Positions 760-54,032 of a DNA stretch of 64,000 nt are shown one piece after another. The notes beneath the pieces are model-generated. The model saw nothing but the letters and a program-made list of their open reading frames with translations. It had not been told where the DNA came from and ran no database searches. The stretch is from Magallana gigas (Eukaryota): assembly GCF_963853765.1 (NCBI RefSeq), contig NC_088854.1, positions 12,152,001 to 12,216,000 on the forward strand, given 5' to 3'. The translations under genes and the position numbers were made by a program. Position 1 is the stretch's first letter. The number at the start of each line of letters is the position of its first letter.

Positions 760-891
760 ATTCCATATACTGCTGATCACATATAAAAGGCACAGTCTTC
801 TCTATCCTGAATTGTGTCATTTTAATGTTTTTGCTCAATACCACTGGTGGAGAATTCCAGCGAATCGTCAAAGAGTTTGTGCTTTGGCCAT
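760..891 (-). CDS. Gene A exon 6
   Basis: 132 bp, YGQSTNSLTIRWNSPP...QFRI...CDQQYME, donor gtaagt. Confidence 0.88.
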
Positions 892-3800
892 CTACAATAA
901 ACCTCAAGCACAATGATTTAATTCTCCAAATTGGTTCCATTTTTTTCAACAAATGGTTCAAAAAAGCTTAACGTATGAATCAAAAAGGTATAATTTTTTT
1001 TAATGTTTGAGTCCTGAAATCCCTCCATCACGGTATTCCTGGTGCCGTCAATTACGTACAACTCTCTATTTTAATGTGGCATGTCTGTATATCAAGTGGA
1101 TACTTCCGTAGGTCCATTTCACATGTATACGTTCCAGTTACTCTAAATCAAGTGGAAACTTATTAAATTGTTTTTATTTGCAATTATATCATTTAAATTA
1201 TGATATTTTAGCAGAACTAGATATATATTAATCACATGGTGAACCTAGTAAAAGGTTAAATACAATTTGGTCACTTTTTAAGACATTTAGCTATTATTCG
1301 CCTGAATGAAAGGCGAAAATTTATCTTTTACAGCTTAAACGTTGTGCTTATCATAAACTCAGGGTAGTATAAATACAATTGAAAACTAGACAACTTTGAG
1401 ATGGTGACCATATCAAAGAACCCTGCTTTTATAACGGACAATAGGATGAAAAGCATTTCAGAGAATTTTGCTTTGCCCTGACCTATAAGGGCTGTTGCTT
1501 AAACGCGGAACGGAAAACGGAACGGAACGGAAAATATCATATCACATTTATTGCTTTAAAAGGGTATAGACTGGCCGGAAACGATTTACTTTGTATCATT
1601 TATTAATATCTAATGAATGATTATCAACATGTGGCTGTCTTATTGATATTCTTATGAATGTCTATCAAATATAGCATTGTATTCAATTGGCTTTAGTTGA
1701 GTTCGAAACGGAAAAAATCAAATGTATACGAATTGTGAAATATTAACATGATTAAACGAGTAAATAAGCTAACAATTTTTTACTTTTTTACTTTTTTTTC
1801 TTATATAATATTGCTGGCATATCAGCGTAACGTACGCAGATAGTGAAGGCGTTTTATGTGTTTTTGAGTATTTTTATATTTCAAATATGTTGTATATACT
1901 TTGAACATTGAATGTTTGGTGTTCTATACGATCTTATATCATACAGACGATACAGTATCATTGATATGGGGAAAAAAAAACGTACGACTGACGGCAGTCA
2001 AAATTTAAATACGTACATTAAACATTAAAATACCCGGTATCTAGTGAAACTAGTGTTTTTAGACATGCAATTTTGTTTACGTTAGCAATACTTGGCGGTT
2101 GTTAATTCCTGCAGCTATATAAGTATGATCCGTATAGAGAGCTGTAGACGTTGCCTGGTTAGATTTTCCAATTGAAATATAAATTAGGACTATAGTCTGT
2201 CAATCCCAAAATATTCATGCAGCATATTTGGACGATTTAAAAAAAAATACACATACCTGTAAAAGATGCAATTGAAATGAAACGGGAAATATCCAATGAA
2301 ACTTTATTGACATATTATCATTTGTTTATCGGAAAGAATCACAGGTTCTTACGGAGATTTATAATGGAAAATGTTGACATCTTTTCTCTATTTGGAAGTC
2401 ACTAAGAAGACCTTGCACAATTTTTCAACGTTATAATCTGGGTCTGTTGATTTAAAAAATAAACCCGTAGACTTCTTTATTTTTAGCCGTGATTTGAAAC
2501 CAGCTGATGAGCTAGAGAGGACGTTTTAATGAGGGAATGATGAGCATTTTTTATGCTTCTGAAAGAAAATCGCTTTAACCCTGAGGTATATATAAATATC
2601 GAGTTAATCAGAAAAATGTGAATCAATGATATTTTGGGACAGAATATAGTGGTCAATGCATGTACTTTTAATTTTGAGGAAATAGTTATTCTTGAATAAA
2701 TAATCTAATATTGGTAATCTTTCCAAAAAAAATTAAAAATTACATAAAGTATATCGTTTCATAGCATGATTAACAAATCTATCAAGTAAATAACATTAAA
2801 GAAGATTTTCCGTTTTCCGTTCCGCTTTCCATTCCGCATTTTAGCAACACCCATCTATAAGTTGGACATTTTCCAGCTGGCATAATACTTTTAATCAAAT
2901 CTCATTACCCCTTACTACAGGCATGTTTTGTTCTCCGAGGAAGATTAAGCCAAAGATAAAAACTTACGGTCTAAAACTGATTATAAAGAAACTGATATGA
3001 CCATCACGATGACTTTGTTCAAAGTCACTACTCATTATAAACCCAAAAGCTCTATTTATGTGAAGTACATGTATGAGCCAAATAGGGCTAAGTAGAGAGT
3101 ATATATAATCTAAAAAAAAATGCATGATCCAATATGACATTGACACTAGATCTACAAACATCATTCAAGCTTACTGTACACCCTTTGATCATAGACACTG
3201 TATATGGAGGTAGTAACTAGTTACCTTACGCTGTAAGACACTCTCCCATCTGGAAATATGTTAAACATTATATTGGGAACAGAAACATCGTGGAAGTGAG
3301 CAGTTTTTTCATTGACAAAATATATGTCAGGTATCCAGACTTTATTAATGGCTTTGTGGTGAAGTTCAAGGACGGAAACCCCACTAGAGTTGTGAGAAAG
3401 ACGGATATCTCTCCATCTCTGACGCAAAAAGAAGCTCATGGTAAAATCCTAAAATTAAAAGCATATTGTTTTATGATACCAATGCCTTGACAATAGCACA
3501 CAGTAAAATCTAGTCTTCACATTAGAGATTTTGTAAAACAGGTTTATATTAACAAACTTAAACAAACTTTCGGGGTTAACGAGCAATTAAAAAACACTAT
3601 CATCAAATATTAATTTTTTCCTTTAGTGTTTGCAAGAAGATCTGCATTTAAAAGATGTACTATTCAAGTACCAAACATGTCTTTTTTTCAATGTTTCTTA
3701 TTATTAAAAGACTGCTCTGGTGAATCTCAGGTAGAATGCATTAAAAAAATTTATTAACGTAGTATGGTACATTTGTCGATATTAACGTCAGTAGAAGTCC

Positions 3801-53100: not shown

Positions 53101-54032
53101 TCTCATAGTCAAAATGATGGCTTTTAAAGTTATTGTACAGGGAATTGGTTCATACAAATGATTTTATCTCTTGATAGTTTGAGCAAGTTGTATTTGTATG
53201 ATTAAGATGTTTGTTTAAAATCAACGCTATCGAACATCAATTAGGCAGAATCCATCTGTTGCGGCTTTTTTTCATTTTAGATTGTGCAGATAATATTTTC
53301 CCATCATCTAAAATATAATCTGTGAAATAATTTCTCATGCATTTTTTCCTTGAAAAGTTGTAACGTTTTACGGTCAAGATCTACGTACATGATGGGAATA
53401 GTCAGTAAGCAAAACCTTATTAAAGTTAAACATATCTTATAGAGAAGGTCAACGGAAGATGAAAGACAATCTCGCATTTGATTTAATTTAAGAATGAATT
53501 TAAAACATGTACATGTTATCGTATTCACCAAACAATCATGCTCAATTAAATATCTCATCTTATCACACCTATAGCTACTGTCATGTCGTAAAGTTTGAAT
53601 TTACCGGGTGTTTACTGCCATCCGGTAAATTCAAAATTTACATCATGACACTACTGTAATAAGCCATTAGTTATAGAATTCATACATCAAAGTTCAGAAT
53701 CTTGAAGGCTCCGTTCATTTACAATATCTTGATTTTGAATATGCCGTTAAAGTGATGATTTCGTTTAACGTCAAATATATGATATTCCTGTTGTTGGCTG
53801 TATTGTACCTTACCATCTTCATAGTTCGGGGCAATCAATGGATCGTAGTGGGACTCATCAATTAATTGGTGGATTAGTTCATGTCTGAATTTTTAAAAAA
53901 AACCTCATGATTCAAAATATCTATAGTCAAAACAATTTCAACAGAAATCGGGAAACAATTACTAGTAATCTACCTGGACAATTCGCCGCTGCTGTGATAA
54001 AACTGGAAACATAAAACCACCATGAGAATCAT
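49988..54032 (-). CDS. Gene D: complete Cys-loop ligand-gated chloride channel subunit, close paralogue of gene C, 392 aa
   Basis: Exons 53974-54032 (acceptor at 54046), 53814-53884, 52690-52757, 52240-52463, 51584-51666, 51214-51348, 50493-50866, 49988-50152 sum to 1179 nt, open from ATG to TGA. Cys-loop [15 protein letters not shown]; M2 [20 protein letters not shown]. Confidence 0.92.
50493..50866 (-). CDS. Gene D exon 7 (M1-M3)
   Basis: 374 bp, GDFAC...[17 protein letters not shown]...; donor gtaagt. Confidence 0.95.
51214..51348 (-). CDS. Gene D exon 6
   Basis: 135 bp, [12 protein letters not shown]...LPQF...CSTEYGE; the ORF track shows a different frame. Confidence 0.9.
51584..51666 (-). 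CDS. Gene D exon 5 (Cys-loop)
   Basis: 83 bp, [27 protein letters not shown]. Confidence 0.93.
52240..52463 (-). CDS. Gene D exon 4
   Basis: 224 bp, [12 protein letters not shown]...PDSFFPQEK...VFYSMR. Confidence 0.93.
52690..52757 (-). CDS. Gene D exon 3
   Basis: 68 bp, [22 protein letters not shown]. Confidence 0.92.
53579..53650. repeat. Small palindromic element (relative at 57881-57949)
   Basis: tgtcatgtcgtaaagtttgaatttaccgg ... ccggtaaattcaaaatttacatcatgaca. Confidence 0.75.
53814..53884 (-). CDS. Gene D exon 2
   Basis: 71 bp, [23 protein letters not shown]. Confidence 0.9.
53974..54032 (-). CDS. Gene D exon 1 (signal peptide)
   Basis: [20 protein letters not shown], phase-2 donor AG|gtagat. 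Confidence 0.78.

Follow-up and report, generated by a model that had tools for sequence, protein, structure and literature searches.

A 64,000-nucleotide stretch of the Magallana gigas genome (the window) very probably holds part of an old, mixed cluster, in which four GlyR-like anion-channel subunit genes, here called A, B, C, and D, maintain three types of ligand-binding pocket, and two of them, C and D, have undergone gene conversion.

Four genes with one exon plan

Four Cys-loop genes, each with eight coding exons, were modeled at 760-54089 on the minus strand, bearing out an earlier reading of this DNA (the preliminary description) as a same-strand tandem array of four GlyR-like anion-channel subunits. 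Genes B, C, and D are intact, and gene A is intact up to the window's left edge, where it runs off. The splice models of all four genes also upheld a common exon plan: exons 3 and 5 measure 68 and 83 bp, exon 4 measures 224 bp (227 bp in B), the intron phases (2,1,0,2,1,1,0) are identical, every junction is GT-AG, and the frames are open. This 68/224/83-bp exon trio is common to vertebrate GlyR alpha genes.

Database searches were run exon by exon, and entries P0152 (D), P0153 (C), P0275 (B), and P0277 (A) stood for the full-length proteins. The splice models are 98.5 to 100% identical to annotated Magallana/Crassostrea "glycine receptor subunit alpha-2-like" proteins, while a single-exon search of a representative library of 1.84 billion proteins returned only relatives at 44 to 54% full-length identity and many fused tandem predictions. 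The coding exons are as follows.

760-891, minus strand: gene A exon 6 (132 bp), with the tail of loop B, loop F, and the first half of loop C (CDQQYME)
1060-1142, minus strand: gene A exon 5 (83 bp), with the Cys-loop
3225-3448, minus strand: gene A exon 4 (224 bp), with loops D, A, and E; Pfam Neur_chan_LBD, 2.6e-15
7748-7815, minus strand: gene A exon 3 (68 bp), located by tblastn with relatives
7909-7973, minus strand: gene A exon 2 (65 bp), located by tblastn with relatives
8355-8398, minus strand: gene A exon 1, tentative; a short signal-peptide-like ORF with a GT donor, phase 2
16497-23489, minus strand: gene B, complete; stop codon at 16494-16496
Gene B exons 1 to 4, minus strand: 23404-23489, 21759-21823, 20153-20220, 18640-18866 (227 bp)
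Gene B exons 5 to 8, minus strand: 17986-18068, 17401-17532, 16901-17268 (M1-M3), 16497-16661
38796-42189, minus strand: gene C, complete; stop codon at 38793-38795
Gene C exons 1 to 4, minus strand: 42128-42189, 41932-42002, 41381-41448, 41079-41302
Gene C exons 5 to 8, minus strand: 40897-40979, 40473-40604, 39866-40239, 38796-38951
49991-54048, minus strand: gene D, complete coding region; stop codon at 49988-49990
Gene D exons 1 to 4, minus strand: 53974-54048 (ATG at 54032), 53814-53884, 52690-52757, 52240-52463
Gene D exons 5 to 8, minus strand: 51584-51666, 51214-51348 (135 bp), 50493-50866, 49991-50152
46874-47003: assembly gap of 130 N between D and C, from a gap check

Exon 7 of gene A and all that follows it lie outside the window, past base 1; from residue 60 to residue 205, identity between the A model and P0277 (M. 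gigas) is 100%, and a search for homology support for its exon 1 found none. Gene B is 98.5% identical to P0275, [quoted passage not shown] of which an annotated isoform uses an exon 6 donor 12 nt farther on, adding GNST in loop C. Gene C is 99.2% identical to P0153 (M. gigas), and its UniProt model has an extra upstream coding exon at ~42701-42745. Gene D is 99.5% identical to P0152; its start was placed at the ATG at 54032, since an exon 1 acceptor lies at 54048.

The assembly gap is flanked by the stop codon of D and the most upstream annotated coding exon of C (42745). It lies at least 2.9 kb from the nearest coding exon; no coding exon adjoins it and no frame spans it, and as an intergenic gap it limits the uncertainty to the spacing between C and D. 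Searches by tblastn with 150 relatives revealed no additional gene or pseudogene in the interval from B to C or upstream of D, and Pfam found no family domain in ten other ORFs of the window.

Transcription was checked at the read level for D, and for A, B, and C it was taken from public annotation. All seven introns of D were seen as CT..AC joints in spliced RNA contigs, the joints from exon 4 to exon 7 in three runs (X1, X2, and X5) and the remaining joints in two (X1 and X2). RNA runs of more than eight studies contained 0.20 to 0.26 of the sampled words, and raw reads from X19, of which ~1% was sampled, mapped to repeats only and so do not inform on expression level. The D transcript has a 3' UTR that extends below 49800 and a 5' UTR exon further upstream, with a loose end of an RNA contig at 54048. 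D is therefore transcribed and spliced exactly as modeled. The RNA contigs examined, which lose rare forms, did not show the annotated isoform of D that skips exon 6.

Family and channel class

Pfam searches with single exons identified Neur_chan_LBD (3e-15 to 4e-17) and Neur_chan_memb (2e-31 to 5e-33), and database entries identical to the genes contain both domains. These E values lie well past what chance would give, and the motifs quoted in the preliminary description are on the minus strand where it had placed them. Two sets were located directly by motif search.

Loop A, minus strand: 3305-3331 (A), 18720-18746 (B), 41159-41185 (C), 52320-52346 (D)
Motif from PAR to M3, minus strand: 17024-17134 (B), 39992-40102 (C), 50619-50729 (D)

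Loop B (ESYGQ, ESFGY, or ESYSY) and loop C (CDITYSNVTFTC, CQTQYEVGDFAC, and CSTEYGEVGDFAC) cross splice junctions and read as quoted. All four genes have a C-x13-C Cys-loop in exon 5 and a second, loop-C disulfide pair (equivalents of C198 and C209), and their M1-M3 (exon 7) and M4 (exon 8) segments align with GlyR. At the start of M2, the -2'/-1'/0' motif is PAR in B, C, and D, where motif search and alignment confirmed both this motif and the conserved M2-M3 segment. In A, as read from P0277, it is AAR, as in GABA-A beta.

Among solved structures, full-length D matched GlyR alpha at 2.5e-103, GluCl at 3e-83, and GABA-A beta at 1e-82. Its best match, vertebrate GlyR alpha (GLRA1-4), has in common with the oyster genes the Cys-loop, the loop-C disulfide, and PAR, as well as Arg65, Ser129, Glu157, the loop-B aromatic, Tyr202, and an aromatic residue at 207. 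The M1-M3 segments of B, C, and D are 68 to 70% identical to GlyR alpha, and the extracellular domains 34 to 41%. The two differ in that GlyR alpha has Thr204, which is replaced in the oyster genes, and an M3-M4 loop far longer than the very short one of B, C, and D; that of A is long. Judged by their sequences, the four genes encode pentameric ligand-gated anion-channel subunits of a lophotrochozoan family nearest vertebrate GlyR alpha, with anion selectivity and agonist class predicted from motifs. A GlyR-like family with odd binding motifs in C. gigas has already been recorded (Lynagh 2015; PMC4338433).

An old, partly reshuffled cluster

Trees were built with FastTree (162 rows) and with IQ-TREE under PMSF (92 rows). 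In the IQ-TREE analysis, the oyster clade of C and D was supported at 100/100, and these two were the only sisters among the four genes. The A group (100/100) and the B group (100/100; Pinctada its sister at 96/87) fell together in clade II (100/98). The bivalve group containing C/D (96/84) was sister to the Aplysia-type GluCl clade (94/88). Lophotrochozoan sequences formed a clade of their own (100/96), separate from vertebrate GlyR alpha (100/99), with no GLRA orthology. Deep nodes within the bivalve parts of both clades were weak (25 to 77% bootstrap), leaving it unsure which non-oyster groups are the exact sisters of C/D and A/B.

The preliminary description had portrayed the array as a lineage-expanded family. 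Our trees agree that the family is expanded in bivalves, and at least seven conserved oyster GlyR-like groups were retrieved, a count that is a lower bound; however, the four genes are not a single expansion. Forcing the four oyster groups into one clade, the grouping claimed in the preliminary description, lowered lnL by 134 and was rejected (p-AU 3.2e-5) in a test performed once the tree was known. One-to-one orthology, which that description had set against its own reading, was found in part: each of A, B, C, and D has one-to-one orthologues at 75 to 85% identity across three other oyster genera, but none were found beyond oysters and pearl oysters among the proteins sampled. The D and C genes of Ostrea have kept both order and strand, with 20 kb separating them, and no further family member was found in the 10-kb flanks of the Ostrea C gene. 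In the scallop Ylistrum, genes of both clades lie ~115 kb apart on one scaffold and on the same strand. The cluster is thus old and has been reshuffled in part, rather than having arisen as new sensors in a recent burst. C and D stem from an oyster-lineage duplication that predated the split of Crassostrea, Ostrea, and Saccostrea, while A and B represent a second molluscan clade, whose separation from that of C/D is older than the divergence of gastropods and bivalves.

Clustered Cys-loop genes are also known in C. gigas from the nAChR arrays (Jiao et al. 2019, PMC6896357), which share with the present cluster an origin by stepwise tandem duplication and the persistence of old shared arrays. 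The nAChR expansion, comprising 132 genes, is largely intron poor through retroposition (PMC6896357), whereas the GlyR-like genes retain all of the ancestral introns.

Gene conversion between C and D

The M2-M3 segment, described earlier as almost invariant across B, C, and D, is indeed conserved, but the identity between C and D is due in part to gene conversion over one tract.

39866-40101 (C) paired with 50493-50728 (D), minus strand: gene-conversion tract, M2-M3 part of exon 7

Within exon 7, C and D differ at 11 sites in the last 231 nt versus 26 in the first 110 nt. Across the tract, these paralogues are 94.9% identical, compared to 78% identity with their Ostrea orthologues, and dS between them is 0.44 in exon 7 and saturated elsewhere. 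Conversion is patchy, covering M2-M3 in M. gigas and exon 4 in Ostrea, and it blurs C/D orthology; the Ostrea C gene groups weakly with the D group (61/20). The near-invariance of M2-M3 in C and D thus reflects, in part, concerted evolution.

Dead copies are frequent in tandem families, and annotated isoforms include one of D that skips exon 6 and one of A that is truncated at the N terminus, as might be expected if some copies were decaying pseudogenes whose loops differ by drift. We consider this highly improbable. All frames are open with GT-AG junctions, dN/dS between C and D is 0.08 to 0.10 where measurable, the orthologues in the three other oyster genera have conserved pockets, and D is expressed and spliced. 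Pseudogene status was rejected on these grounds.

Three pocket types

The preliminary description had loops A, B, and C diversified among the genes. They do differ among A, B, and C/D, but 96% of 27 pocket positions are the same in C and D; the genes thus have three pocket types rather than four, and C and D are not tuned apart. At the loop-A position (GlyR 101), A has Val, B has Lys, and C/D have Pro. At the loop-G position (GlyR Asn46; GLC-1 Arg37), the residue table and HMMER show Lys in C/D, whereas A and B have Leu. Loop-B Tyr161 is replaced by Gln or His in the gene A group. The pattern of a conserved pore and a divergent ligand domain was also seen, but it is general: the pore is more conserved than the ligand domain in every paralogue pair, and also in comparison with vertebrate GlyR alpha1 (0.68 to 0.70 identity versus 0.39 to 0.41), and between types the pocket (0.42 to 0.48 identity) is no more divergent than the rest of the extracellular domain (0.37 to 0.46). 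Among oyster orthologues, pocket residues are more conserved than the rest of this domain in every group (0.90 versus 0.65 in A). One-to-one oyster orthologues with conserved pockets point to three maintained types: A, B, and C/D.

The GlyR loop-C Thr is missing from B, C, and D, as had been reported. The residue table shows Asn in B, Val in C and D, and Glu in A at the equivalent of Thr204, and HMMER pairs the Val with Thr204. Its absence in C. gigas is on record (PMC4338433), and its loss is common among the molluscan family members sampled rather than peculiar to the cluster. The remainder of the amino-acid agonist motif (Arg65, Ser129, Glu157, the loop-B aromatic, Tyr202, and the aromatic at 207) is kept. 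With Arg65 and Ser129 on the complementary face, loop-B Glu157, and the aromatic box in place, a small amino-acid-type agonist would be expected to bind at subunit interfaces. Such binding would open a chloride-selective pore and give rise to inhibitory or shunting currents.

The preliminary description went further, proposing lineage-expanded inhibitory channels that are each tuned to a different, probably non-glycine ligand (a transmitter or a chemosensory cue) and that possibly form heteromers. This is conceivable, although we lean against it. Each of the three pocket signatures is distinct and is conserved among oyster genera, Thr204 is absent, and there are odd residues (loop-G Lys in C/D, loop-A Lys in B, and Gln/His161 with Glu204 in A); moreover, the family is expanded in bivalves, and its lophotrochozoan relatives have switched ligand, the Aplysia GluCl having arisen within it (PMC4338433). 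On the other hand, the near-identity of the C and D pockets, a between-type pocket divergence not exceeding that of the rest of the domain, the widespread loss of Thr204 in molluscs, and an array that is not a single expansion all weigh against this proposal.

Some Cys-loop subunits, such as GlyR beta and GABA-A gamma, serve as accessory subunits of heteromers. One or more of the oyster genes, above all A, could likewise bind no agonist on the principal face and function only in heteromers with their neighbors. A has a stem of 1.15 substitutions per site, an M1-M3 segment only 0.52 to 0.56 identical to those of the others, AAR in place of PAR, a divergent M2-M3 linker, and the Tyr161 replacement; Thr204 is missing from all types, and the M3-M4 loops are short in B, C, and D and long in A. 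We nevertheless regard an accessory role as rather unlikely, as the conservation of the pocket among orthologues, which in A clearly exceeds that of the rest of the domain, argues for a binding site in use.

A basic residue occupies the loop-G position in C/D and the loop-A position in B, the two places where arginine is needed for glutamate recognition (PMC4338433, PMC4178172), raising the idea that C/D or B are convergent glutamate-gated chloride channels. The Aplysia-type GluCls (GluClAc1/2; Kehoe 2009; PMC4178172; PMC4338433) are members of the same lophotrochozoan family of GlyR-like channels, the gastropod clade with Aplysia P0239 is the sister of the bivalve group with C/D, these GluCls and C/D have a Y-x-E-x-G-x-F-x-C pattern in loop C, and the scallop relatives P0178 and P0184 have Arg at the loop-G position. 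Ecdysozoan GluCls (C. elegans GLC-1 and H. contortus AVR-14B) are likewise anion channels with a loop-C disulfide, and in nematodes their loop A, PD(S/T)FF(P/Q)NEK, is similar to that of C/D (PDSFFPQEK). However, C/D fall outside the ecdysozoan clade and have Lys where its members have loop-G Arg, and changing this Arg to Lys (R76K) in AVR-14B abolishes glutamate sensitivity (PMC5339774). A-like GluCls have Arg at the loop-A position (101), Tyr63, Ala at 157, and a loop-C Thr, whereas C/D have Pro, Ile, Glu, and Val at these positions and B has Lys101. Thus, in terms of the features used for Aplysia/Schistosoma-type GluCls (PMC4338433, PMC4178172), the oyster genes have no loop-A Arg, keep Glu157 (the loop-B Glu absent from verified GluCls), and have no Thr204, the loop-C Thr of the amino-acid motif. 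We therefore consider convergence on glutamate gating improbable; with no arginine in loop A or loop G and the loop-B Glu retained, glutamate is an unlikely agonist for these predicted pockets. High ivermectin sensitivity would likewise not be expected, since the M3 Gly is absent and Ala288 is kept.

Implications

The favored reading, an old mixed cluster with three maintained pocket types and C/D gene conversion, is solid but ordinary: annotation already covers the genes, their family has been described before, and in this superfamily it is usual for the pore to be conserved and the ligand domain to vary. The open-access and preprint literature searched yielded no functional work on bivalve GlyR-like chloride channels. 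The cluster constitutes a ready clone set, with three pocket types and a natural near-duplicate pair in C and D, that could test which residues govern agonist choice without the loop-C threonine and whether Lys can do the work of an arginine in loop A or loop G. Conversion between C and D, patchy as it is, provides an example of a shared pore retained among diverging subunits. More speculatively, and with what we take to be a low probability, A, B (loop-A Lys), and C/D (loop-G Lys, loop-A Pro-Gln, and loop-C Val) may sense three different small molecules, at least one of them outside the classical inhibitory transmitters (perhaps one of the osmolyte-type amino acids in which bivalves are rich), with recurrent gene conversion keeping one pore while the ligand domains stay apart. 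If true, this would be the anion-channel counterpart of bivalve nAChR diversification.

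Gene structure and transcription

The window is AT-rich (G+C, 32.7%) and holds four genes, A to D from left to right, with a common plan of eight coding exons. Gene models were built from stop-free segments, paralogue-to-paralogue BLASTP, and inspection of boundaries. All motifs quoted in the preliminary description were located, on the minus strand, and its shared exon plan and identical intron phases were borne out: exons 3, 4, and 5 measure 68, 224 (227 in B), and 83 bp, the phases are 2,1,0,2,1,1,0 in each gene, and the junctions are all GT-AG. M1 to M3 lie in exon 7 and M4 in exon 8, with a very short M3-M4 loop in B, C, and D.

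Genes of the array and the assembly gap
54032 (ATG) to 49991, minus strand: gene D, splice model
42189 to 38796, minus strand: gene C, splice model
23489 to 16497, minus strand: gene B, splice model
~8398 to 760, then off the window, minus strand: gene A, six exons present, exon 1 tentative
46874-47003: N run between the D stop codon (49988-49990) and the C start, the sole N run in the window

The coding exons nearest to the N run are 2.9 kb and 4.1 kb away; since all lie at least 2.9 kb from it, no reading frame depends on the gap, which leaves uncertain only the C-D distance. In the splice model, C starts at 42189; the UniProt model includes an additional exon, which we located in the window, and starts at 42745.

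Pfam searches with single exons returned Neur_chan_LBD (3e-15 to 4e-17) and Neur_chan_memb (2e-31 to 5e-33). Database proteins were retrieved by exon-wise profile searches, the spliced models being joined only in local scripts. D corresponds to P0152 ("glycine receptor subunit alpha-2-like isoform X2," C. angulata) at 99.5%, C to P0153 (M. gigas) at 99.2%, B to P0275 (C. gigas) at 98.5%, and A to P0277 (M. gigas) at 100% over residues 60-205. These protein matches identify the species as Magallana (Crassostrea) gigas, and all four genes are already annotated in public databases. Previous work has covered the GlyR-like family, its enlargement in C. gigas, and the divergence of its binding motifs (PMC4338433), and for nAChRs, clustered expansions of Cys-loop genes were already on record in bivalves (PMC6896357). 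In the open-access and preprint literature searched, we found no test of a bivalve GlyR-like channel and no description of the cluster or of its gene conversion.

Read-level evidence of transcription covers gene D only. Of the words sampled from the D stretch, a fraction of 0.20 to 0.26 was present in RNA runs of more than eight studies, approximately the exonic share. In contigs of two RNA runs (X1 and X2), 7/7 D introns sit exactly where modeled and have plus-strand ends of CT..AC; X5, recorded as an RNA-Seq library, showed three of them. A loose contig end at 54048 matches the exon 1 acceptor, setting the D start at ATG 54032.

Several further features accompany these models. Exon 6 of D (51214-51348, 45 codons) is exactly skipped in the annotated isoform P0154 (XP_011437833.1) and also in P0156 (Ostrea edulis), which removes loop F and most of loop C; the skipping joint was not seen in RNA contigs aligned to the D stretch. 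Three stretches in D introns and upstream of the gene (50982-51375, 53543-53739, and 54528-54921) reach RNA contig depths of 100 to 1800 with many loose ends and probably belong to an abundant transcribed repeat rather than to the gene. Two segments resemble each other (64 to 80% in protein-level comparison over three frames), one upstream of A exon 2 (8355-8610) and one downstream of C (37170-37415); the tentative exon 1 of A falls inside the former and thus may be repeat-derived. An alternative first exon of A (9121-9204) is used by the annotated isoform X2 (P0277), where it is joined directly to exon 4, dropping exons 1 to 3 and giving a protein without the N-terminal helix and beta1 strand. 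Intron 6 of A carries an ORF mimic (317-742), a 42-bp unit repeated 10.2 times with 94% matches and two open minus-strand frames. Intron 2 of B contains a stop-riddled fragment (20714-20980) that probably derives from a transposon and is 53% identical to the C-terminal portion of the fused prediction P0100. Exon 6 of B offers two possible GT donors 12 nt apart (17389-17401); the distal one, which inserts GNST (an N-x-T sequon) in loop C, is used in P0275, an annotated C. gigas isoform, and the short form occurs in the orthologues of C. virginica, Ostrea, and Saccostrea.

Phylogeny and origin of the array

Against solved structures, full-length D matched GlyR alpha1-3 best (2.5e-103), followed by GluCl alpha (3e-83), GABA-A beta (1e-82), and GlyR beta (7e-80); D exon 7 alone gave the same ranking. 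We built a 162-row FastTree and a 92-row IQ-TREE with a site-heterogeneous model (paired supports below are from the latter), excluding isoforms P0154, P0156, P0167, P0287, and P0300 and database twins of the window genes. In both trees, every lophotrochozoan sequence falls in a single clade (100/96), with vertebrate GlyR alpha (100/99), GABA-A beta, and a nematode GluCl outside it, and the molluscan sequences split into two. Clade I holds cephalopod and chiton genes, a gastropod clade containing the Aplysia protein P0239, which bears the published GluClAc2 signature (loop-A Arg, Tyr63, no loop-B Glu), and a bivalve group (96/84) in which C and D of the oysters form a clade (100/100; stem, 0.69). 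Clade II (100/98) comprises gastropod groups and a large bivalve clade (100/98), in which B (100/100) pairs with a Pinctada gene (96/87) and the sister of A (100/100; stem, 1.15) consists of a Pinctada gene and two additional oyster groups (100/96). Deep bivalve nodes are weakly supported.

The preliminary description had proposed a lineage-expanded family. For every gene, C. virginica, Ostrea edulis, and/or Saccostrea carry a one-to-one orthologue that is 75 to 85% identical; among database matches outside oysters, the best identity to the window genes was 46 to 59%, with nothing closer. Forcing the four oyster groups into one clade cost 134 log-likelihood units (p-AU, 3.2e-5). The array thus did not arise in one recent local burst. 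One-to-one orthology with ancient, separately conserved subunits, the pattern that would have counted against the proposal, was seen within oysters but not across molluscs. C and D are an oyster-lineage duplicate pair predating the split of the oyster genera, and the lineages of A, B, and C/D go back much further.

In Ostrea edulis, D and C lie in the same order on the same strand, 20 kb apart. In the scallop Ylistrum balloti (one scaffold, JAUZWB010000690.1, 709632-860154), two clade I genes are in tandem, with a clade II gene ~115 kb off on the same strand. Judged from the size of the source sequence, most family members of a species are on one chromosome. Orthology, synteny, and the tree together point to a cluster of old origin that gained members in individual lineages. 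In C. virginica, two A-type genes stand in tandem (L003, a stretch from that species, 1-8232 and 10001-18473), with exons ~83 to 95% identical, followed by a 627-residue gene with no Pfam match.

Pore conservation and gene conversion

B, C, and D do share PAR and a near-identical M2-M3, as first described, but such a conserved pore is the norm of the family. Oyster paralogue pairs are 0.62 to 0.80 identical over M1 to M3 versus 0.38 to 0.58 over the extracellular domain, and comparison with mammalian GlyR alpha1 gives 0.68 to 0.70 versus 0.39 to 0.41. A is exceptional, with M1-M3 identity of 0.52 to 0.56, AAR, and a divergent M2-M3 linker.

Between C and D, dS is saturated in all exons but exon 7 (dS, 0.44), where 11 mismatches fall in the last 231 nt versus 26 in the first 110 nt.

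Homogenized tracts
C 39866-40101 and D 50493-50728, minus strand: M2-M3 tract pair, 94.9% between M. gigas paralogues versus 78% to Ostrea orthologues
L001 12162-12383 and L002 7224-7445 (Ostrea edulis stretches): exon 4, 92.8% between paralogues versus 75-77%

The pattern is one of patchy, lineage-specific gene conversion, which adds to family-wide pore conservation as a cause of the near-identical C/D M2-M3.

Three pocket types

We mapped 27 pocket positions by alignment to GlyR alpha1 numbering and verified the mapping on known residues; HMMER independently aligned Val of D with Thr204 and Lys of D with Asn46. All four genes keep Arg65, Ser129, Glu157-Ser158, Tyr202, aromatic residues at 99, 159, and 207, and the loop-C disulfide. 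Thr204 is indeed missing: B has Asn at this position, C/D have Val, and A has Glu. This is hardly distinctive, as Thr204 is also absent from most clade II and many clade I genes of the other molluscs sampled, and its absence in C. gigas and other lophotrochozoans was noted by Lynagh et al. (PMC4338433).

The claim of diversified binding loops holds for A, B, and C/D but not for C versus D, which agree at 96% of the pocket positions compared. Nor was there any sign of extra divergence focused on the loops, since pocket identity among A, B, and C/D (0.42 to 0.48) is the same as that of the remaining domain (0.37 to 0.46). Between orthologues, the pocket is 0.85 to 0.93 identical, versus 0.65 to 0.83 for the rest of the domain. 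C/D agreement and orthologue conservation together define three pocket types, each of which purifying selection has maintained since before the oyster genera diverged.

Candidate ligands

A Gly in M3 is tied to ivermectin sensitivity. The window genes have Ala288, replaced in some relatives by Ser or Phe but in none by the Gly of the nematode GluCl, which suggests that they would lack high ivermectin sensitivity. The retained Arg65, Ser129, Glu157, and aromatic box would suit a small agonist of the amino acid type. GABA is unlikely to bind with high affinity, since the closing loop-C Arg, the criterion of PMC4338433, is absent and a Cys stands in its place. Glutamate also appears unlikely as an agonist, because verified GluCls lack the loop-B Glu and rely on an Arg, which lies in loop G in ecdysozoans and in loop A in lophotrochozoans (PMC4338433, PMC4178172). 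The loop-G position is Lys in C/D and the loop-A position is Lys in B; the equivalent R76K substitution in AVR-14B abolishes glutamate sensitivity (PMC5339774). The scallop relatives of C/D (P0178 and P0184), in contrast, bear Arg at the same loop-G position as ecdysozoan GluCls. The Alvinella channel Alv-a1-pHCl, an annelid GlyR-like channel, is proton sensitive, and by analogy, gating by something other than an amino acid may occur in the GlyR-like family.
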